NCBI GenBank assembly: GCA_020536535.1
Contig: JAHLWZ010000418.1
Span: 1 to 36,781, forward strand
DNA from: Pelomyxa schiedti
Taxonomy: Eukaryota > Protista > Evosea
Direction: 5' to 3'
Length of the DNA stretch: 36,781 bases
The position numbers and the translations under genes are program-made. The notes beneath the pieces are model-generated. The model did not search any database. It was not told the DNA's origin and was given only the letters and a program-made list of their open reading frames with translations. Positions 4,217-32,754 of the stretch are shown here, in pieces (position 1 is the stretch's first letter; each line of letters begins with the position of its first letter).

Positions 4217-7200
4217 ATGTTCACCACTACGTTGCACAACAACCAGTCACGAGTTGGGCCCCACGAGTGGTTCACCGCCGCGATTAGAGGAAACACTAAC
4301 TCACTGTGGGAGCTGCTGGCCGGCGACCCCCGCCTACTCAACTCTGTCAACGACCTACAACAACAAGTGGTGTGTAAACATTGTTTTTTTTTTTTTTTCC
4401 TTTTTTCTTTTTCTCACACCATCATCATTCAATACTACAATATACACAATAATTCAGACAGCGTTGCATGCAGCCACGTGGGGAGGGAGTCCAAAGTGCG
4501 TTGAGATCCTGCTGTCAATGAATATTAATGTCAGTTCCCAGGTTTGTTTGTGGATATGACCACTTATTTTGATACTCACAAACTTGTACCATCTCACTTC
4601 ACAGATTGTGTGTGACATACCTTTACATTCCCTTTTCTCTAAAATCACAAATTCTCCCCCCACCCTACACGGCCCTAGGGTGAGCCTGTATGTACCGCCT
4701 TATTCCCCAAACTCCTCTGACTTGCTCCAATTTCGCTCCTTGCCTCGTTTAGAATGTGTGCAAATGCCCCCACCAAACCTTTTGGTTTATCAATCACCAA
4801 TTATTATTATCATTCATCAATTTCTCTCACTTGCTTCAACTTTACTCCTTTCCTCACTCTGTGTTTAGGATGTGAGTAACTGCCACCCGTTTCATTGATT
4901 TCTCTGACTAACTTCCATTTCCTGCGTTGCTGCATGCTTAGTATGTGCGTAACCTGCCCCAACTCTTTTTTATTGCGTTATTAATCGATTTCTCTGTCTT
5001 GCTTCAATTTCCTGCCTTGCTTCACTATGTCCGTTTAGTATGTGTGTAACCCCTTGTTCATCATCTTTTCTGACTTGCTTTGATTCCAACTCCTTGCTTT
5101 GCTCTGTGATAAATTCAGGGAGTATGTAACAACTCCCCCAACCCTTTTGATAGAATTATACATCAATATCTCTGACTTGCTTCCATTTGCATGTTTAGTA
5201 TGTATGTGACCCCAACAACCCTTTTGTTGCATGACTCTTCGTTTCTTACTTGCCTCAATTTCACTCCTTGCCTGGCTCTGTGAAAAACTCAGGGAGTGTG
5301 TACCCTTTTTTATTATTCATCAATTTCTCTGACTTGCCTCGATTTCCTCCCTTGCTTCACTCTGCTACATGTAGTTTGTGTGTATCTGCCCCCCTCAACC
5401 CTTTTTTTTATTGCATTATTCATCAATTTCTCGGACTTGCTTCAATTTTCACTCTTGCTTTGCTCTTTGTGATAAATTCAGGGAGTGTGTTACCTTTTTT
5501 GTGTTATTCATCAATTTATCTGACTTCCTTCAATTTCACTCCTTGCTCTGTCTGGCGTGTTTAGATTGTGTGTAACTGCCCTCAACAACCCTTTTTTTTT
5601 CGCGTTATTTATCATCCGTTTCTCTGACTTTCTTCAATTTTCACCCCTTGCCTCACTGTGTAACATTTAGCAAGTGTGTAGCTTCTGCCCTCCTTTTTTT
5701 TATTGCATAATACATCAATTTGTTGCGTTGTTCATCAATTTATCTGACTTGCTTCACCATACTTTGCTCTGTCTGGTGTTTTAGCATGTGTGTATCCCTT
5801 ACCTCAGGTCTTTTATTAATATTATTCCCTAACTTCTCTGATTTGCTTCAATTTCACTCCTTGCCTCACTCTCTCTGTTCAGCGGGTGTGTAACTACCCC
5901 CACCCCACCCTGTTTTTCATGAATTATTCATCAACTTATCTGACTTGCATAAATTTCACTCCTTGCTTCACATCTGGCGTTTTTAGCTTGTGTGTAACTT
6001 TTTATTATTCATCAACTTCTCTGACTTGCTTCAACTTTCACTCCTTGCTTCACTCTGTCTGCGGCATGTGTTTAGTATGTGTGTAACTCATTCCACCCTT
6101 TTTTGTTGCATGATTCGTCTGTTTCTTACTTTCTTCAATTTCACTCCTTGCTTGGCTCATGAAAAACTCAGGGAGTGTGTACCTTTTTTGTTATTCAATT
6201 TCTCTGACTTGGTTTTTTCACATTTGTGGATTGTTGTATTGCCATCAGGGAGTAAGTAAACACTCCATTGCAGCTTTTCATTCTAACTTTCTGGATTTAT
6301 GGTATTTTGCACTGCAGATTGTACGAACTCACATCTTGATTCTATCTCCCTTGTGCTTACCTTATTATTTTTAAGGAAGTACGAGCTTTTTTCTTTTGTT
6401 CTTGTTGTCTTCCTTATATCTTTTCTTGGGGTCTCTCTCTTTCAACTGAAAGGGTGATGTAAGCCCCCCACCTCCAATGTGCTTTGTTTTCTTTCCCTTT
6501 TTTGTTGCTTATTTTATTTCCATCTTTCTCTCCCTCTTTAGACCGCACTTCACCTTGCCTGCAGATTTGGACATGTTCAAATTGTGAAACAACTTCTATC
6601 TTGTGTGGATATAGGTACTCACCTCAAGGTTGTTTTCCCCCTGTTTGATTGACATGTAATCTTTCTGTTGGCACAGAACAAGGATGGGAAAACAGCCCTC
6701 GAGTGCTCTAAAAATGATGAAGTGCGGCAACTGTTCCAAACTGTGTGTCCAACCACCACAACATTGCAAACAACAACACCAGAGGTCACCAATCCCAAAA
6801 CAGCCCAACAACAACCACATCCACAAGCCCCCTCTGCTCCGGACAATACATCATCATATGCATTCACATCAACAACGCAGGCAGCCACCACTCCTAAAAC
6901 AGCCCAACAACAACAACCACGGCTACCCTCTGCTCCAAACATGACTTCACTGCCACCATCCACCCCACCACAACCACAACCCAAACCAACAACTGTGGTG
7001 GCAACCACAACCACAACTGTGAGGACCAGCAAGGTGCTCCCGAAAGATCTCGAAGAACGTGGTGACATCATCATCAACGTCAGGAAACAAGAAAGAGACT
7101 CTTGGGAAATTGGGGCAAAGCAGCTGAATAGTTGAGTGAAACTCCCTCCTCCAATCAAATGCACAAACATTGGTGCCCATCATCTCACTCACTTTGTGTT

Positions 7201-11924: not shown

Positions 11925-14900
11925 TCAAGAGGAAGACAGGGGAGGAGGAGTTGATGGTTGTGTGTGGTTGTGGTGGTTGTCAGGGAAAGATGCCGCGATG
12001 TTGGCGAGGCACCTGGTGATGTGCCCCGCCACGTCCTGGTTGTCACTTGTTGTGGCTGTGTTGCTGTTGCCGGTGGTCACGGTGCCCGTTGCTGCTGCTG
12101 TTGCTGCTGCCGCTGCTGTTGTAGTTGACGGTCCGGAATTGGTGAACGCGATCTCGGCGCACGTAATCAACGCCTTGTCAATCGCCGGGAACGACGGCCG
12201 GTCGCTTTCTGCGTGTTGGTCAGTGAGGGATAGGGATGGAAGAGGGAGAGAGAGAGAGAGACTGCGGGGAAGAAGAAAAACAAACCGAGGATCGAGAGGC
12301 AGGACTCAACAAGGACAGAGAAAAGACCAACGCACGCGCGGTGCACGTTGTTGTTCAGCAGCTTGGGCTCGGATCGCAACGCGGAAGTGATTGCGATCTT
12401 CCGGCCGAGGCACTCCACCACCGGAATCTCTCCAATGTCATCGCAGATACGGTCCACTTCTGTGTGTGGTGCGAGTCAGATGATGGGTTTTTATTGTTGT
12501 AAACAACAACAAACCGGCAATTTCAGGGGGTGAGAGTGATGTCCGCTGGACCCTCATAAATTCTGTCACTTGAGCACCGGACTTTGGCATCTTCACTGAG
12601 GGCACTTCGCCTTGCAGAAGTTCACTCAGCAAAACTGCAAACTCCCACATATCCCCTTTTTGAATTTGTATTTGTGTTTATGTGTGTGGTGGTGCGGAAT
12701 TAATGTTGAGTGAACTAGCAAACAGGAACACCATCAATCATACCTTTGATTCCGTAGTGCCCAGTGTGCATCTGGGGTGGCAAGTAAATTGGTGTTCCGG
12801 CTCCATTTGTAAAACTCCCGATCGGAGGAGCTGGGTTACTCCCGCTGCCGAATTGGTTCTGCTGGAGGGCTCTTGACACTCCTTCATTTTCATTGGATTT
12901 AAGTGTTGAGACATGTAGAAAGTAGTACCAAAGTCAGTGAGTTTTGGAGTTCCACAAGAATCCAGGAGAACATTGTTGCTGCTCAGGTCCCGGTGCATCA
13001 CATTCCTCCTGAATAGCATCAGAATCGAATTAAATTGAGTTGAAAGGAAACGGAACCTGTGAAGTGCGGACATTCCTTTGGCAATTCCTGAGGAAACTGC
13101 CACAACTTCCATGAATGTCAAATCTTTCTGGTAATTGTGTGGTTTGGTATTTTCGTATTGTATTTACAATTGATTATGAGGTGAGAGCAAAACAAACATG
13201 ATGAAGGAGCTGCCTGAGGCTCAATTCCATGAGTTCAGACACGATCCAGAGTGACCCTGTGCTCGTGATGCACGTTCCAAGGCATCTCACAATGTTTGGG
13301 TGCCTCAGTCTTGACGAAATCTGTGTGGGTACATATATATTGATGAGTTGACGAATGATCAAAAAGTGTCTCACGCACCAGAGCTTCCTGCTGAAACCTG
13401 GTGATGTTGAACTCAGACTTGATGGCTTCGTGAAGTGATTTCACTGCCACAAACGTTGTTGTTGTTGTTTCCGACGAGGATGAGGAAGTGGTCACTGCGT
13501 TGTGAAGGAAGGTGCACTTGAAAACAGTTCCATACGATCCTACTCCAAGTGTGGAAACAACTTTCAGGTCTTTCTCTTGTATTGACACGGTTGATTTGAT
13601 TCGAACTTTGAGTTGAACAACCCTGTTTGTGCTGCGGCTATCTTGTTGTCGTTGTTGAATGTCCTCCCAGCTTATGGATGAATCAGTCAACAGCAGTTCC
13701 TCAGAGTTGTTGTGTTCTGAACCAACAATGAAAATTACTTGTTGTGTTGGTTCCACTCCAAACTTCCTTGCAATGATAAGCTTAACAACCTTTTTGTTTG
13801 TTTCCCCCACACAGCCAACCAGTTAGCAACAACATCACAACAAACAATGAGAAAGGGAGAAGGCGGGGGAAGAAAAGAAAAGGGAGAATGCGAGAGAGGA
13901 AAGGCACCATTTGAAGGGGACAGGAGCTGCACACAATTTCATCAAAAGAGGGAAGATCCTCAAATGCAATCCTGATTTGTGATCGTTTGCCGTTTTCAGG
14001 GAGAATCCACGTGCCTTCTCCTTGTTCAACATGTGACATCACGTGCTTCGTATCTGGATTTACAGTTAGAATTACACTGGTGGTGGTGCCAAGTTATGCA
14101 TGCGCGAAAAGGGAGGGAGTGTGATGAGTGGGTGGCAGCGCAAACAGTGTTGTTGAAGATCACGAAATCTTTGTTGGTCAGCTTCTCTGCATCTTCTTTC
14201 ATCATGGAGAAGCTTCAGATTCATTGTATTTTCTCCCTCCAAATGTGTGATTCGTGCCTTCAATTCTGTGAGGTCGTCTTCTGAACACAAAATGAGTGAG
14301 ATGATGGGCACCAATGTTGTGGCATTTGTTTCTATTGAAGAGGGGTGTTTCGCTCAACTCTTCAGCTGAGTTGCCTCGGTTTCCCAGCGGTCTCTTTCTG
14401 GGTTCCTGGTGTTGTTGTCGGAGATGTCACAACCCACCTCAAAAGTTTTGGGGAGCACCTTGCTGGCCCTCATGGTTGCCACTGGTGTGGGTTGTGTCTG
14501 TGTTGGTGTTTGTGCTTGTGGTTGTGTTTGTGGTTGTGATATGGATGGTGAGGATGACGTGGCATGAGCTGTTTTGGGGGTTGTGACTGCCCGTGCTGCT
14601 GTTGATGTTGTGGTGGCTGGACACATTATCTGGAACAGTTGCCGCACTTCATCATCGTCCGAGCACTCAAGTGCAGTTTTTCCCTCCTTGTTCTGTGTTG
14701 ACAGGACAATTAAACACACGCATTTCAGTCAGGCAAGGGGGAAACAAACCTTGATGTGAGGGTGAATACCAACCCGAGCCAGAAGCTGCCTCACAATTTC
14801 AACCTTTCCATCTCTGCAGGCAAGGTGAAGTGCAGTCTGAGAAGATGAAAATTAATTTTTGTTTCATGCAACATAAAACATAAAGAAAAAAAAAACCAAA

Positions 14901-16077
14901 GCACATTGGGAGTGGGGAGTCAGTACATCGCCCTTTCGTTTCCAAGAGACCCCAAGAAAATATACATGAGGGAAGAAACAATACCAACAACAAGAAAAAA
15001 AGTTCATACTGCCTTGGAAAACAAGTAAAAAAGAGTCAAGGTGTGAGGGTTCATACAATCTACAATGCAAAATCGTAATAGACAAATCCAGCCAAGTTAG
15101 AACGAAAAGCAGCAAGGGAGTATTTTTACTTACTCCCTGGACAATAGGGAAGTGTAAAAATGAGATAATAAGTGTCACAGAGAAATTGAAACAAAGTCAG
15201 AGACTGCATAAATATGGTTGAGGTGGGGAGGGGTCAATTGCACACCCACTAACATGCCAGTAAAGTGTGTTTGCAAACAAGGGGTGAAATTGAAGCAAGT
15301 AAGAGACATTGTTGTCGTTAATTATTACCCAATATAAAAGTGGGTGGTTACACACAATCTAACCACAGACAGAGTGAAGCAAAATGGAAGCAAGTCAGAG
15401 AATTTGATGTATAATTATTACGCAATAAAAAGGGTTTGGGTGAGGGCCAGTGACACACCATCTAAGCATGCCCACAGAGTGACGTAAGGAGTGAAATTTA
15501 CCAACAACGAAAAAAAACAAATTTAGCTTACATACTAGACATGCTCATAGAGCGAATTCGGAGATAAGGTGATGAATAATGCAATAAAGAAAGGATTGAC
15601 AGTATACATACAGGCTTACCCTGGGATGGAAGATATACGTTTTTAGAGAAAAGGGAATGCAAACACAATCAGAGGAAGGAACGTATACACTACATACAAG
15701 CTAGGAAAGTGAGATGGAACAGTGATGCTGATAACCCAACAAACCTGGGAATTGACTTTGATATTTTGCTTTGACAGCAGGAACTCAACACACTGTGGCC
15801 TCCCTCCCCACGTTGCTGCATGCAACGCTGTCTGTGTGTGTTGTCAACGTGTGTGTGTGTGTGCGGGCAAAACAATTACAATCATCACGTGTGAGAAATA
15901 GAAAGAAAGCGGTTTTTGGTTCGCGAACATCTCACTCACACACACCATTCGTTCTCCTTCGTATTTCACGCAGTTTAGGAGGGCGGGGTGGTCGGCCAGC
16001 AGCCTCCGCAGTGTGTCAGGGTCTCCTTGATGCGCGGCTGCGAACCACTCGTCAATCGTCTCTAGTGATGCCGCCAT
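11925..16077 (-). CDS. Ankyrin (micro-exon loop) / coiled-coil / ubiquitin-like / kinase, copy B
   Basis: Start MAASLETIDEWFAAAHQGD. Same exon structure and motifs as copy A (TALHLAC, GVGSYG, HRDLSSNN, DFG, GTPIYLPPQ). Stop at 11925. Confidence 0.88.
14927..15700 (-). other. Array of 10 candidate micro-exons in copy B
   Basis: On the minus strand, each AG|exon|GT: CTT 15698-15700, GGTAAGCCT 15612-15620, TAT 15532-15534, ATG 15459-15461, ATT 15356-15358, TGG 15246-15248, GGA 15134-15136, ATT 15057-15059, GCA 15010-15012, GGCGAT 14927-14932. Translation L-GKP-Y-M-I-W-G-I-A-GD. Confidence 0.82.
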
Positions 16078-16236: not shown

Positions 16237-18091
16237 ATGACCGCGGTTGCCACCAACGAAATCGCGTCGTTGGCTCGCTGCGCACTGAGCGCGGCGTCGC
16301 AGGTGGTCGCGCTGGGCGTCGGGGCCCGCTCGCGGCGGTGCGGCGCCCGCAGCCCCGCGCGGCTGCTGGACCCCTCGTCGCTGCGCGCCCTCGCCGTGTC
16401 CTGGGTCCTGCCCCCGGCCCGCCGCTCCCTCGTGTCCCTGCGCATCCCCTTCGCCGACGGGCCCCCGGACTTCACCTCCAGGAGGTACCACAACGAGGGG
16501 CAGCCCGACGACTACGGCGCGCTTCTGGTCTGGGAACAGGTTGCCAGGCGCCAGATGGGACCCGACGGCGGCGAGGAGGGCTACGACGTGGTGCTGCTCG
16601 TCGCGGTCACGCTGACCCTGGCAGCCACGGTTGTGCCCGTGGTGCAGCCGGACCGGCACATCATGAGCAACATCGAGGGGTGGCTGGACGCGGACCGGTT
16701 GATGTGGCGCGCGAGGCGGGCCTATGACATGCCTGTGGATATTCNNNNNNNNNNNNNNNNNNNNNNNNNNNNNNNNNNNNNNNNNNNNNNNNNNNNNNNN
16801 NNNNNNNNNNNNNNNNNNNNNNNNNNNNNNNNNNNNNNNNNNNNGCCACGGTTGTGCCCGTGGTGCAGCCGGACCGGCACATCATGAGCAACATCGAGGG
16901 GTGGCTGGACGCGGACCGGTTGATGTGGCGCGCGAGGCGGGCCTATGACATGCCTGTGGATATTCACGTTGGCGGCATTAGCAGAATCACTGGGAGCAGA
17001 GGAGGTAAACCCACCCATCCACACACTTTCCATTTGATACGATTAATAACTTTGAAACATTACTAATTAGAACACTATTTGACTACATAATAAATTTATT
17101 AATATATTTCCGGTTAATTAATTGTCGTCAACTATTTAACAACGAATAATATTTAATAGGAAATTAAATTGATAATGAATATATAGAATTTGAATTATTT
17201 CGAATTCATTCTCTCTTAGAAAGAAGTGAATTCAATGAGGATGAAGTGTTTGAGACTGATAAGCACCAGGGACTGATCCGATGCACCGGAAATTCCCGGT
17301 GGATGATTGCGGCTTACCACATGGAACTCCTGCTGTGGAAGAGGAGCGGCCCTGTTGTCAACAACCACCATCGCACCATTCCAATTCCACCGGGGCAGAT
17401 AGATATGAAGTGGATGACAGCAACAACCACCAGCAGCCTGCGCCAGAGTGATGTGCTGCAGCTGTTGATTCTGGACAACGGTGCTGCTCAAGTTCACCTT
17501 TTACCTGTGGATGTTCCAAGGTCCTTTGAGACCTCTTCTCTTCAGCTGGTATCCTCCATCCCCTCTGTGTCCTGCCCCACTCCAAGCTTGGCTTTTGGCC
17601 CTGGTGAGTTCTTCTGGAATTCAAACACAGGTGACATCTTCCTTCCCCTTGTTCTTGATGACACCACTGCATACACGCTCCAGGCTCTCTGCGTCCAGAC
17701 AGGCCACACTGTGCAGCTCCTTCAGTCACCCACCAACCTGGATGTGATCAGGGTGGATCACACCCACTTTGCTGCCCACTGCGCCGGATCGGGCATTTCG
17801 ATGCTTCTTCCACCACACTGCCGCTGCCCTGAGACAGGCACACTCTCAGTGTTTGATACCAACCGGATTCCATCAGAATCTGCCTCAGACCCCTGTGCTA
17901 CACTCACGTGCCAGGGTTCACTGTGGTCGTGCAAGAATGGCCTTATTGTGACCACCACAACGAGTAGTAGCCAGGATTTGAACATTGGTGGAGGAGGCCA
18001 ACAACAGGTTGTTATTATTGTTGATTGTTCCACTGGCCTGACTGTTGCCCAAGTGCCTGTGAGGTACACAAGCAAAATTGGTATGTGGTAG
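16237..18091 (+). CDS. Hypothetical protein, LSARxQ-motif family, two exons (intron 17005-17219)
   Basis: N-terminus LSAASQVVALGVGARSRRCGARSPARLL. A phase-1 GT-AG intron joins in frame to ORF 17246-18091. The N gap with duplicated flanks looks like an assembly artefact. Confidence 0.75.
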
Positions 18092-18252: not shown

Positions 18253-20327
18253 TCACCACATTTGAATGGAACTGGCCTTCAGGCTGAGTGGAGTCGACCT
18301 AACTCCAGAGAGAGTGAGGATGAGTGCGCCTGTTGAAGGGCTGGTCACTTGCACAAATTCCTCCATGGGCCCACTTCCACAGGAGCAACTGCAGCTGCTG
18401 AAGAACAAGCCTCCCTCGGCAATCAGGCCATTCACCATGCCAGCACACTCAATCATCCTCAGAGGCCCTCCTCCTGCCCCTGCGTTGCTGCTGCTGGTGG
18501 TGGTGCAACAGTTGTTGATGTCCCAGATTTCCACCACACCAGGGTGCCAAACACAAAACTGTGACTCACCCAGCTGTGACATCATTACTGAATGCCCCCT
18601 TTGAGGAGGTCTCGCGAGTGGGGATGAAAGAACACTTAGAGAACTGCTCCCCTCCTCCACTTTGAACATGCCAACATCTGAATGCCAAGCATCAAAGACA
18701 TAAACACGAGAACCAGACTCTTTGAACAGAACAAAGGCGGCCCTGACACTACAAAGTTTAAATTTGGCCGTGCAGGTCGTGACGCTCAGTGCTGTCAATT
18801 TTTTTTGGGGTGTTGACCACGATTTCTCCACGTGAACTCTGTCAATTGAGAAGCTCTTCCATTCGCCAGAGTAACCAAGCTCGAGGATTGAGCACAAGAT
18901 GCCCTCATCAGGGCGTGTGTTGCTGAAAAAAAACTGCGTGTTTAATGGGGTCGTCCACCAGCCCACCGCACTGCAATATGGTTCGGTTGGCAATTTTACT
19001 TGGAGCATTCCCTCTTGAGGGTTTTTCTCCCGAATGCTTGCAATCACAACTGAGGGTAGTTCTGAGGGTGTGATTCCTCCAAACAAGAAAAAGAACCATT
19101 TGGCATTGTGTGAGAAGGTGAACGGGTGACAGTCAAAGTACACCAGAGGCAAGCTCTTTCCACTCTCAATGTTTCTCAGACTGTAACTCCAATGATCGCC
19201 ATTCTTACACTCCACCACGTTCCATTGATTTGCATTGATCACCTTGCGTCCAACAGACCCACACACCCACCTGACATCATCACCAATGACTGAGCCCAAA
19301 ATAGCGGACACCCTGAACTGAGCCACACAACTGAATGGAATGGTCGAGTCAGGCTCAACCGGCACAGAGAACAGCATCGTGACCTGGTGGCAGTACTCCC
19401 ACACAATCCTGATTGCCAAGTGATTGCCGTCGCGCTGTTGCTCTTGATACTCCTCGTGGTGGCGATGCAGGCGCGAAGGCAATGACAACAAGACCAAAGA
19501 AGACGGAGAGGAAGCATCAGCTGACGAGCCGACCTCAGAGGACGAAACCATGAAGTTGAGAAGGGAGCGGAGCTTCCCGCAGCGAGGGTGTGTCACCATC
19601 AGCAACGAAACGAACTGCTCCCGCGCACTCAGCGAAACAGCAGCCGACAAGTGCCGCTCCGCCTTCTGCTGAGGTTGCTGTATTACCGCTTCCGTGCCCA
19701 AAGATTCAGCTGCTGGTGCAGGCATANNNNNNNNNNNNNNNNNNNNNNNNNNNNNNNNNNNNNNNNNNNNNNNNNNNNNNNNNNNNNNNNNNNNNNNNNN
19801 NNNNNNNNNNNNNNNNNNNNNNNNNNCGAAACGAACTGCTCCCGCGCACTCAGCGAAACAGCAGCCGACAAGTGCCGCTCCGCCTTCTGCTGAGGTTGCT
19901 GTATTACCGCTTCCGTGCCCAAAGATTCAGCTGCTGGTGCAGGCATAACAGGGGGGTTCCACTCTTGCACCATTGCTGTGGAGGTGGTGGCTCCAGTCAT
20001 TTGGTTGGTGGGTGCTAGTTGTTGTGTTGTTATTGTTCCATCCAAAGACGACGAGGACGAGGACGAGGACGTAGAAGTGTATGACGTCGTTCTCCCTTTT
20101 TTTGCAGGCGTCAGCTGTTGGCGTTGTTGTGATGGTTGCGTCGGTCTATTGTTGTTGTTGTTACTGTTGTTGTTGATTTCGGGGTTTTTTCTGGGAGGCA
20201 CTGGTGTTGACGAGGCGGCGTCGTCCCCGTCGTGGTAGTGATGGTTGTCAGGGTCGCCACTGTCGGCACCACCATCGCCACCACGATGTGGTGGTTTGTC
20301 GTTGCTCCTACCGTTGCGACCCATCAC
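18253..20327 (-). CDS. Hypothetical protein, LSARxQ-motif family (paralogue of 33422-34897)
   Basis: Long ORF with LSAREQFVSLLMVTHPRCG, LAIRIVWEYC, VEIWDIN, TGALILTLSG. ORFs 19683-20327 and 18253-19725 join once the duplicated gap flank is collapsed. Confidence 0.8.
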
Positions 20328-22473: not shown

Positions 22474-25400
22474 TTACCAGCAGAGCCCCAACCGGAGAGC
22501 TTGCAGTTGGCCAATGGCACGAGCATCACCCAGGTCAGCTGCCCGATGCCACAATCCAATTGCCTTGTCAATGTCTTTGCCAATACCATCGGAGCCTTTG
22601 AAGTAACGCCATGCAATGCTGTTCATTGCTGCAGGATAGCCAGCATCAGCAGCCCTCTGAATCAGTGTAACTGCCTTGCTGATGTCCTTCTCAACACCCT
22701 TGCCTTTGAAATAACAGCAACCAAGGCCAGTCATTGCCCTGGCATTACCCACATCAGCAGCCCTCTGGTACAGTGTGACTGCCTTGTGAATGTCCTTCTC
22801 GACGCCATTGCCTTTGTAAAAACACACACCAAGGTTGCACATTGCGGTGGCATTACCAGCATCAGCAGCCCTCAGGGACAGCGTCACTGCCTTGTGAACG
22901 TCCTTCTCAACACCATTGCCTTTGTAAAAACACACAGCATGGTTGCACATTGCCCTGGCATCACCAGCATCAGCAGCCCTCTGGTACAGTGGCACTGCCT
23001 TGTGAATGTCCTTGTCAACACCTCCAACACCAAACTCATGGCAGAGGCCCAGAGATGTGACAGAGGAGGAACCCCAGTCAATTGGACCAACAGAACAAGT
23101 GATCGCAATGGGTTTTCCACTGGGAACACTGCATGGCGACGCTGCTGCTTGTGCCATGATTTCGGCTAAAAGGTGGCCTGCTGATGAACCTTCTTGGTGG
23201 TTGTCTGTGGATGAAGAGTAGCAGAACATACTCCACACGGCAAGAAAGTACATGCAAGACAACGACTGTTCTGCTGAAGATGTTGTGGATGATGACTGTT
23301 GATGATGAATGTTGAATCTCAGTGATGCTGTTGACACAAGGTCAGCCCATTCAGAAACAATGTACTCTTCTTTGTTGTTTGTTTCATTCAACACATGCAT
23401 GCAATGCATTCTCATTTCCTCTGGTGAGAAGGAGAGAGCACGAGAGAAAGCCAGCCACAGGCACGTGGGAATGTGCTGATGAAGTGACACGTGGTCATTG
23501 ATGACATAACGTACGCAAACAAGGAACAACAGACCAGGGAGGTAATAATAGTCATGATCTGTGGTGGTATTTTATTAACATTTGTGTTTTGTTGGACAAA
23601 AACAAAAATGTAGGTAGGAACACACCCGAGGTATTGATGATCATCTCAGATTCAAACAGGGAGAATGCGTTGGCAACAAGAGCAAGGGCAGAGTCAATGT
23701 TTCCCACTTGCAACTCCAAAAGTGCTTCCATCATCATCTCGTTTCGTGTGTAAATCACATTCCTCATAAAAATGGAGGCTGGTGTAACTGGTTCTTGTTG
23801 TATTGCTGCAATTGTCGTTGGGCTCTTTTTCAAAAGCAACAAGGCAGTGTTGTGGAAACTTTCAGTATCACCTGAAATGTGCCTTGTCCAGAGTGCCGTC
23901 AAAACCAATTCCGGGAGTGTGTTTCTATGTTTCTTGTTGATGATGGCTCTTGTAAATTCCACGTCTGTGGCTGTGAAGGATGCGGTCTTGCCTCTCAGTG
24001 ATGCAACTTCAACTGCTTGTTGATGACGACTGTCTGTTGTATGCTGGTTGCAAAAAGAGAGATAATGCAAAAGCAACAAAGCAGGTGAAAACACGGGGTC
24101 AACATCAAGTGCTTGGTGGAGGGTGTCAACACTGTCTTCCGTGGAGGAACCACAAAGAATCTGACATGTTGCCTTGCTTGTCAATGTAACTGAAATTGGA
24201 GTGTAAGTGAAAGATACTCCACCCTTATTCTTACAACCTGCATCGTTTGTCAGAGGAATAACACAAGAGTAAAAAGAGAGGAGTTCAGAAGGGCTTGGTG
24301 ACTCAATGTTCAACAGAACCTCAAATGCATCAAGTAAGGGCATTCTCTTATCAGGGTCACATTGCAACAATGAGCGAACGAGGTCACAGAACTCCTTTGG
24401 GAACTGTGGTGGCTTCATGGGGAAAAGCTCCTCACTCTCAAATAAGAATGTGACCTTTCTGCTTGGGCCATAATCATCAGGGTATCCTGGAAGTGGGTGC
24501 TTTCCGCACATGGCAAGCTCAAACAGGATGCACCCAAGTTCAAATGATGGTTGCTGTGTTTTTGTTGTTTGTGAGAGATGGACGAAGTTTCACATGATTA
24601 AATCCAAAATACCTTGTCACAACACAATGTTGAAGAGTGATCAGGGTTCTGCCTGTATCCTGCAATTCCATTGATGACCTCCGGTGCTCTGTGACTTGTA
24701 TTTCCTCTCACCGAAATGAGAGACCTTGTTTCCATCTCAAATGGTCTTCTTGTATTGCTGGTTCTGAGAAACTTTGTTGCACGACCAAGGCCAATCAAAA
24801 TCACTTGTTCTTTGTTCTGTTGATTAAATTGCATTTGGATGAGTATTTTGAGTGAACAAAAGAGAGGGCTGGGTGGGAACAGCACACACAGAAGAAACAA
24901 CGATGTTGTCCAGTTTGATGTCAAAGTGAATGGTTTGATTCACGAAAAGATGAACAAGAGCAGCACAGATATCCCTTGAATACTTGTGAACAATGGGCCA
25001 CGGTGTGGTCGTTGCACGGGGAGGAGCAATGTTTTTCATGTGCTTCAGGAAGTGTTCCAATGTCTCAGAGTGATGCTCGAACACAACCCACACACACACA
25101 CGCATCCTCTTCTGAACTGGGTCAAAGGCCATGCCCTTGGCCGCTGGTGGGAGGTAGTCATAAAACTCTTCTGGGATGCGGTCTCTGAAGTGACAGAAGT
25201 ACCGGTTTACATTTGGATGTGGTTCCAACGTGGAGGACACAACGTATTCATTCTGTTACAGGAGGAGAAGACAACAACAAAAAAGTAATGTCAATTGAGT
25301 TACGTCTCAGGCAGGAAGGATGTGCACGTTACCTCAAAGGCATTCTTCACACTTGCTGTAATACCATAATTCAAAATAGCCTTGAGGACATACGACTGGT

Positions 25401-31000: not shown

Positions 31001-32754
31001 ATTTGATGGGGAAGGGGTTTTTCACTGCACTCTTCAGCTGCTTTGCCTCGATTTCCCAGCAGTCTCTCTCTTGTTTCCTGATGTTGTTGCTGGTTCCCAT
31101 TGTTGTTGTCGTTGGTCTTGCTGTTGCCCCCACAGTTGCAGTCGGTTGTGGTTGTGGTTTTGGTGGGGCGGATGAAGATCGTGATGGCCTGTTTGGAGCA
31201 GAGGGTGGTATCGGATATGGCTGTTGTTGTGGGGCTGTTTTGAGAGTGGCAACTGCCTGTGTTGTTGCTGATGTTGTGGCTGGACACACGGCTTGGAACG
31301 CTTGATGCACTTGATCATTTTTCGAGCACTCAAGTGCTGTTTTTCCCTCCTTGTTCTGTTCCGATAGGAAAATTACAACATATCAATCAAACAAAAGGGG
31401 GGGGGGACCTTGATGTGAGTGCCAGTACCCACACAAGACAGAAGTTGCTTCACAATTGCAACGTTTCCTTTTCTGCAAGCAAGATGAAGCGCGGTCTGAG
31501 AGGGAGAGAGGGAGACGAAAATTAAGTTTTGTGTCAAGCATCAAATAAAGGAAAGAAAACAAAGGACATTGGGAGGGGTGGGCGTACATCACCCTTTCAA
31601 TTTGAAAGAGAGACCCCCAAAAGATATATGAGTAACACAACAAGAACAAGAAAAAAATGTTGTACTTCCTGAAAAATAAGAAGGTAAGCACAGGAAATAT
31701 TCAAGGAGTGGATTTCATACAATCTGCAGCAGTGCAAAATATCATAAAAATCGCGGAAAGTTAGAATAAAAAAAAAGCCAGGGAGTACTTACTCCCTAAG
31801 GATCCAATTGTCCAACAATAGGTAGAAAAATGAGAGAAAGTGTTTCAGAGAAATTGAAGCAAGTCAGAAACTGATGAATAAACACAATAAAAAAGGGATG
31901 GGAGCAGTTACGCACATACTAAATATGCCACAGAGAGTGAAGCAAAGAGAGATAAATTGAAGCAAGTCATAAATTGATGATTAAACGCAATAAAAAAGTG
32001 TTGGGAGCAGTTACACAATACTAAATATGCCACAGAGAGTGAAAGTGAAGCAAAGAGAGAAATTGAAGCAAGTCATAAATTGATGAATACAATAAAAAGG
32101 GATGAGAGCAGTTACACACAGGCTAAACATGCCACAGAGAGTGAAGCAAGGAGGGAGAAATTGAAGCAAGTCAGAAATTGATGAATAAGTGCAATAANNN
32201 NNNNNNNNNNNNNNNNNNNNNNNNNNNNNNNNNNNNNNNNNNNNNNNNNNNNNNNNNNNNNNNNNNNNNNNNNNNNNNNNNNNNNNNNNNNNNNNNNGCA
32301 ATAAAAAAGGATTGAGAGTGGCAGTACGTACAAGATCCCCCTGGATTTACGTTGTTAGAGGAAAGGGAATGAAAACATAATCAAGATAGGTATTACATAC
32401 AATCTGTGAAGTGAGAGATACAAATTTGTGAGTGCCTACAAAATAAGGACCCTCAAACCTGAGAATTCACATGGATATTCATTGACAGCAGGAACTCGAC
32501 GCACTGTGGGTTCCCTCCCCACGTGGCTGCATGCAACGCTGTCTGTGTGTGGCGGCGAAAACGAATTATTATCGTGTGGAGAAAAAAAAAAAAAGAATTA
32601 CGCGCATTGCACTCACCACTCGTTCCCGTTCGTCGTTGACAGAGTTTAGTATGTAGCGGTCGCCGGCCAGATGGCGCCGCAGTGCGTCGGTGTCGCCATT
32701 TTTCGCGGCACGGAACCACTCCTCCGGTCCCACGCCTGTCCATAGTTCTATCAT
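28021..32754 (-). CDS. Ankyrin (micro-exon loop) / coiled-coil / ubiquitin-like / kinase, copy C
   Basis: Start MIELWTGVGPEEWFRAAKNGD. Same exon chain and kinase motifs as copies A and B. Stop at 28021. Confidence 0.88.
31588..32403 (-). other. Micro-exon array in copy C (at least 8 intact, one defective, partly hidden by an N gap)
   Basis: ATT 32401-32403, GGGGATCTT 32332-32340, [gap 32198-32297], CCT 32120-32122, defective TAT(T) 32017-32020, TAT 31916-31918, GGA 31793-31795, ATT 31721-31723, GAA 31666-31668, GGTGAT 31588-31593. Repeat period about 102 bp at 31850-32195. Confidence 0.8.

Follow-up and report, generated by a model that had tools for sequence, protein, structure and literature searches.

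One-codon exons in an unannotated family of putative ankyrin receptor genes of Pelomyxa schiedti

Introduction

The nank (NACHT-ANK) genes of the truffle Tuber melanosporum are NLR-like genes whose primary description is reportedly that of Iotti et al. 2012. Three papers portray these NACHT-ankyrin genes as containing tens of 3-bp mini-exons that undergo alternative splicing (PMC4986451, PMC13449251, PMC9815663). Schistosome MEG genes encode secreted, mostly disordered proteins and have exons of 3-81 bp and introns of up to 5 kb (PMC10526429). Exon shuffling has been described for brown algal ROCO-LRR and NB-ARC-TPR genes, and repeat shuffling for fungal HNWD genes (PMC13449251, PMC9815663).

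Here, we report an analysis of a window of 36,781 nucleotides (contig JAHLWZ010000418.1) from the anaerobic amoeba Pelomyxa schiedti, whose assembly comprises 52.4 Mb in 5337 scaffolds and whose genes have 7.4 introns each on average (PMC8887013). Three full ankyrin-kinase gene copies (A, B and C) lie in the window, where a fourth relative is represented by its 3' end. Copy B belongs to an unannotated family of putative receptors with one-codon exons; the public gene models omit the array of these exons, and the genes are split or truncated in them. A similar design was previously known only from truffle immune-like genes, and a literature search found no description of such an array in Pelomyxa or other protists.

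Like the nank genes, the P. schiedti genes form an expanded ankyrin-repeat family in which codon-sized, 3-bp mini-exons diversify a presumed recognition domain. Unlike nank, they occur in an amoebozoan and encode ankyrin (-coiled coil-TKL kinase) proteins without NACHT; the Pfam lists of family members hold ankyrin and kinase families only. Since NACHT is absent, a kinase is present and the supergroup is different, the family is not nank, though it follows a like principle. A single hairpin, a fixed framework, tandem units of about 100 nt and apparent positive selection at codon positions 1-2 set the P. schiedti genes apart. Alternative splicing is claimed for nank, whereas the P. schiedti RNA contigs contain in-order joins only, none of them spanning the cassette. 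Truffle and amoeba seem to have evolved the one-codon-exon design separately, in both cases on the ankyrin fold.

With schistosome MEG genes the family shares runs of very short in-frame exons and variable proteins, but its exons are single codons, its introns measure 44-248 nt, and the variation falls in one loop of a folded intracellular domain; micro-exons make up most of the coding sequence in MEG genes, whereas in copy B 13 of about 790 codons lie in them and the introns are of 44-109 nt. ROCO-LRR, NB-ARC-TPR and HNWD genes resemble it as candidate immune receptors with unequal crossing-over of homologous units and positive selection at few positions. These systems shuffle a whole protein repeat, whereas in P. 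schiedti the unit shuffled would be a single amino acid together with its intron. Functional analogies exist in antibody CDR-H3 and Dscam, which combine a constant framework with a Tyr/Gly/Asp/aromatic-rich loop of variable length; they have no homology to the P. schiedti loop, and the likeness is functional only.

Results

Copy B and its array

Gene B lies on the minus strand, as do all of its features given below. Its first coding exon (15946-16077; 44 codons, ankyrin-like repeat 1, GTGTGT donor) is homologous to the N-terminus of the public model P0033. The array is flanked by two ankyrin exons of 87 nt (upstream, 15745-15831; downstream, 14750-14836), each of which, searched exon by exon, scores above the PF00023 cutoff over profile positions 4-30 of 33. 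Because the exon ends fall at Ank positions 30 and 4, the cells between them fill the hairpin. The rest of the gene (11928-14692) comprises the end of the ankyrin domain, a low-complexity linker, a coiled coil and a TKL-type kinase, and is open through all exons of the public model P0040. This model is copy B, maps to it exon by exon to the stop codon, and carries PF07714/PF00069, the TKL-type kinase domain lying in the open reading frame of the gene. It begins within the last-but-one intron of the array, splices exactly at the GD cell, and is without the remaining array cells and the first two exons. An assembly artefact was rejected, as copy B is unbroken in DNA run X4 and the allelic contig C5218 retains all five cells that it covers (the last five), despite several intron indels. 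Copy B is an intact ankyrin–coiled-coil–TKL kinase gene with a short cassette.

Between the two flanking exons, a 908-nt 'intron' (14837-15744) holds ten cells, each with AG directly 5' and GT directly 3'. In order they measure 3, 9, 3, 3, 3, 3, 3, 3, 3 and 6 nt, amounting to 39 nt or 13 codons, and lie among eleven introns of 44-109 nt each. They translate L, GKP, Y, M, I, W, G, I, A, GD, each where an earlier note on this DNA had placed it in its reading L-GKP-[Y-M-I-W]-G-I-A-GD. The first framework cell, CTT (15698-15700), encodes L in place of the usual ATT (I), and the homologous cell is spliced in L046- and L038-type RNA. The second, GGTAAGCCT (15612-15620), is the 9-nt cell (GKP, of the G-x-P/L family); it is present in public models P0033 and P0047 and is in keeping with the length of RNA contig X2 record 11. 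Internal GTAAGC and AAG motifs would on paper permit 1-nt or 3-nt readings of this cell; both are absent from the 9-nt cell of many paralogues, and the public models use the 9-nt form. Four cassette codons follow as putative exons: TAT (Y, 15532-15534), ATG (M, 15459-15461), ATT (I, 15356-15358) and TGG (W, 15246-15248). Cell calling and the alignment of arrays identified the framework cells GGA (G, 15134-15136, with a GTAAGT donor) and ATT (I, 15057-15059). The next, GCA (15010-15012), encodes A in place of the usual GAA (E), and the homologous GAA is spliced in RNA contig X1 record 3. The last, GGCGAT (GD, 14927-14932), supplies the G-x that precedes TALH in the ankyrin consensus and is spliced in P0040 and in RNA of three paralogues.

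Cell calling bore out the readings proposed for the other two copies. Copy A (array at 4542-6541, plus strand) has 22 cells and reads I-GEP-16 codons-G-I-E-GD. Copy C (31496-32458, minus strand) reads I-GDL-gap, P, (broken), Y-G-I-E-GD; its array contains an assembly gap and at least two intact cassette cells, and the middle cell has a damaged donor.

Several other features of the window were observed. Positions 1-330 hold the 3' end of the further paralogue, whose ankyrin exon is protein-identical to that of the minimal copy L048 (contig C1160) and whose next exon seems 1-nt frameshifted near 225. The kinase module and the domain preceding it (13379-13789, minus strand) are common to P. schiedti proteins whose N-termini have been swapped (for LRR, MORN, ubiquitin or ankyrin of other types) and which form a modular sensor-kinase superfamily. 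An ORF at 22474-23529 (minus strand) contains 108-nt (36-aa) tandem repeats, Sel1-like in look, and adjoins a kinase-like gene. At 16624-16965 and 19606-19947, exact 121-nt duplicates flanking N gaps are scaffolding artefacts.

The paralogue family

We searched the genome (52,367,397 bases in 5337 contigs) for the family and found about 30 further members, fragments included. In most copies, I/T and a 9-nt G-x-x cell precede the 3-24 cassette codons, and G, I, E/Q and GD follow them. Each cassette codon sits on its own repeat unit of about 100 nt. The lengths of all cells are divisible by 3, with phase 0 throughout, and introns range from 44 to 248 nt with a median of 96 nt. The 3-nt cells number 8 in B, 20 in A and up to 28 in L028. 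Protein searches and a profile-free HMMER search returned only P. schiedti gene models and no transcript-derived protein with the full loop. When metagenomes were scanned with the unit motif and with P0033, the sole result was an ordinary ankyrin protein encoded without introns, and no related array was recovered.

Among 24 arrays, the framework is kept as GD in 24, G in 22, I in 21 and E in 19, so that framework codons are conserved in 19-24 of 24 arrays versus a consensus of 50-75% at neighbouring intron positions; AG and GT in this comparison are fixed by the calling rule. The last cell is GGTGAT in 21 arrays and one of three synonymous variants in the others, in agreement with the view that GGT/GGC is a silent change. 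Three minimal paralogues have 4-5 cells only (D-A-D-GE, D-H-F-GD and N-N-N-A-GD), which yield a canonical ankyrin hairpin (D-x-x-G-D/E) ahead of TALH. Since these paralogues have an ordinary hairpin, the array represents a hairpin that has expanded, and a gene may have no cassette at all. The constant framework proposed in the earlier note thus holds for most of the 24 arrays and fails for the minimal paralogues, and single cells can be lost, as L042 shows with its I cell. In a tree of the flanking exons, whose resolution is weak, the minimal copies group loosely and no root is established. A single-sequence AlphaFold model of P0033, which is poor (pLDDT 53.5), places the insertion site between two helices.

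Two members deserve separate mention. L042 (G000:C530, ~182300) is expressed; its framework I cell is without AG, a second 9-nt cell is present, and the frame-neutral loss is tolerated. L059 (G000:C328:713-4625) consists of two tandem members that are apparently ankyrin-only, the kinase being absent, and that could be decoys or soluble binders.

Across 38 array regions, GT lies at a distance of 3 downstream of YAG 413 times, as against 29 in shuffled sequence and 69 on the opposite strand, the repeat units behind these counts not being independent. A chance origin of the cells was rejected, as this spacing is far above the shuffles. The unbiased test was to anchor units on an intron-body motif rather than on AG/GT: 261 of 267 units then have a 3-nt cell, 1 has a 6-nt cell and 5 have none. 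A dispersed transposon or satellite was also rejected, since a genome scan found the unit motif only in contigs of the ankyrin-kinase family.

Splicing of the framework cells

The RNA data are contigs from two single-cell RNA runs of one sample, in which four paralogues were informative and copy B had no high-identity match. X1 record 3 (L039/L012/L036 type) presents an intron end, GAA, GGTGAT and the next exon as contiguous, with the upstream intron retained; in DNA its GAA and GGTGAT are split by two introns. X2 record 6 has GGTGAC fused to the next exon of L042. For two further contigs, splicing was deduced from lengths and not from letters read. X2 record 7 (L046) has 279 letters between anchors, so that 103 nt must be removed, and removal of introns 1 (48) and 5 (55) is the only splice state within 3 nt. 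In X2 record 11 (L038 type), the repeat motif occurs within 112 letters versus 224 in DNA, as would be expected if introns 1 and 2 had been removed and both 5' cells retained. Public models, in turn, join Q-I, Q-I-GNP and GD-TALH. These contigs and models together indicate that splicing of the framework cells (3, 6 and 9 nt) proceeds in order and inward from the two ends of the array. The framework cells are real spliced micro-exons.

For the array as a whole, we favor, as the probable though by no means certain reading, in-order splicing into one long loop, with diversification at the DNA level by gain, loss and exchange of units together with positive selection. Combinatorial alternative splicing would instead keep the framework constant and skip subsets of the cassette, giving up to 2^n in-frame loops per gene on top of the variation in DNA. 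The four informative contigs end at retained introns, and none crosses a cassette codon or shows a mature loop; contigs drop rare forms, and the failure of a mature loop to assemble would fit slow in-order splicing as well as loops too diverse to assemble. Any subset of cells would keep the frame, and cassette donors (GTGTGT/GTGCGT) and acceptors are nearly identical between units and hence interchangeable, but the same donors are used by ordinary exons of gene B. One array, L036 (G000:C219:12197-12254, minus strand), has a TGA cassette cell flanked by intact splice sites; the gene that holds it seems intact otherwise, its downstream exons appearing open. Skipping would tolerate both this cell and the damaged cell of copy C, and both count against in-order inclusion. 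So does the truffle precedent, as papers on the nank genes report alternative splicing (PMC4986451, PMC13449251, PMC9815663). On the other hand, all RNA joins in the four partly spliced paralogue contigs are between neighbouring cells and no skip is seen; stops and broken cells are rare; and selection at the codon level already provides diversity. The median intron of 96 nt also speaks against skipping, since short introns favor intron definition. We therefore consider combinatorial splicing possible but rather unlikely, and the same tentative standing attaches to the two-tier, antibody-like repertoire that it would create, with DNA shuffling between paralogues and skipping of up to 24 one-codon exons in each transcript, all within a single ankyrin finger linked to a kinase.

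A Dscam-like mechanism, in which each transcript would receive just one of several mutually exclusive cassette codons and a single loop position would vary, is suggested by the tandem homologous alternatives flanked by constant exons and by a CTGAC branch-like motif whose distance is about 51 nt to the donor and 47 nt to the acceptor. Arrays are redundant, however (H occurs eight times and Y five times in L029), which would be useless for a one-of-n choice, and introns of 44-55 nt are spliced in the gene, so that there is no steric block. We regard such a mechanism as very improbable.

Variation of the cassette codons

Selection was examined in 119 pairs of nearest-neighbour units within arrays whose flanks are at least 95% alike. 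The flanks of these pairs diverge by 2.7%, a value biased downward by nearest-neighbour pairing, versus 41, 46 and 7% at codon positions 1, 2 and 3, with 78 amino-acid changes and 1 silent change; in unfiltered pairs the corresponding figures are 9.8% and 54-56%. Bases adjoining the cassette codons change in 0-4%. Unit counts, here and below, are related by descent, and none amounts to a formal significance test. Whole arrays behave similarly, as two pairs that are 95-96% identical show: L045 and L044 (95.7%) differ in 6 of 8 aligned cassette codons and by three units, and L038a and L038b differ in 3 of 4 aligned codons.

The 332 cassette cells, which include fewer than ten framework cells because three 9-nt cells were called as 3-nt, most often encode Y (55), G (42), F (37), L (35), D (31), I (29), H (21), P (17), R (17) and S (15). 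A single stop, TGA, occurs among them versus about 7 expected from base composition. There are two unit classes, a major one with NNT codons, in which a stop is accordingly impossible, and a minor one with NNA. For 179 of 302 units the nearest relative is in a different array, a distribution consistent with exchange between paralogues or with recent duplication.

A pseudogene copy, L032:1106-2260 (G000:C530:205605-206755), has a truncated ankyrin exon, a frameshift and decayed cells. Most decayed cells belong to this copy, which served as an internal control; the six codons that align with its sister, a small sample, are identical in the two. Since the codons of this pseudogene are unchanged, selection is favored over a local mutator. 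The comparison of units thus shows what is best described as apparent positive selection on the codons of the cassette core, beyond purifying selection on splice sites. Of the claims made earlier for the core, hypervariability is upheld (0-24 codons, with codon identity varying across paralogues) and stops and cells of other than 3 nt proved as rare as the counts above indicate; purifying selection on splice sites agrees with the 261 of 267 units that keep a 3-nt cell, and putative positive selection on the codons has to be added to it.

These data also bear on a reading in which exons are limited to the framework and the cassette would be a minisatellite within an intron, with a mutational hotspot imitating AG-NNN-GT. 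Its tandem-repeat structure, the absence of cassette codons from RNA contigs and their omission from public models would all suit such an element. Change, however, is limited to the two codon positions that alter amino acids while adjacent bases vary by the 0-4% noted above, stops are avoided, the pseudogene copy shows splice-site decay without codon hypervariation, and the unit is confined to one gene family. An intronic minisatellite is therefore improbable.

Discussion

According to the favored reading of in-order splicing, the product would be a receptor-like ankyrin (+ coiled coil + TKL kinase) protein in which the cells encode the beta-hairpin ('finger') linking two ankyrin repeats. The short introns would be removed singly, each 3-9 nt exon being fused to a growing, larger neighbour, as observed for the framework and presumed for the cassette. 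Intron definition would probably lead to the inclusion of mostly all cassette codons in order, giving one long loop per gene, of 13 aa in B and up to about 33 in other copies. Genes of the putative ancestral type have 4-5 cells, and expanded genes would have added 3-24 units of 'intron + one codon', each of about 100 nt. Unequal crossing-over or conversion between homologous introns may add, drop or swap whole codons with no frameshift, and positive selection would then alter codon positions 1-2. The position in an ankyrin hairpin and the aromatic, glycine-rich composition point to a role in variable ligand recognition, in which endosymbionts, prey, parasites or self/non-self may be recognized and the signal coupled to the kinase.

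The arrays provide a natural substrate for studying how the spliceosome joins 10-30 consecutive 3-nt exons, and as public gene models missed them, such systems may hide in other protist genomes. For P. schiedti, the family represents a candidate recognition system in an anaerobic amoeba, with a hypervariable binding loop that would be built codon by codon, introns serving as recombination handles so that both length and sequence may change without a frameshift.
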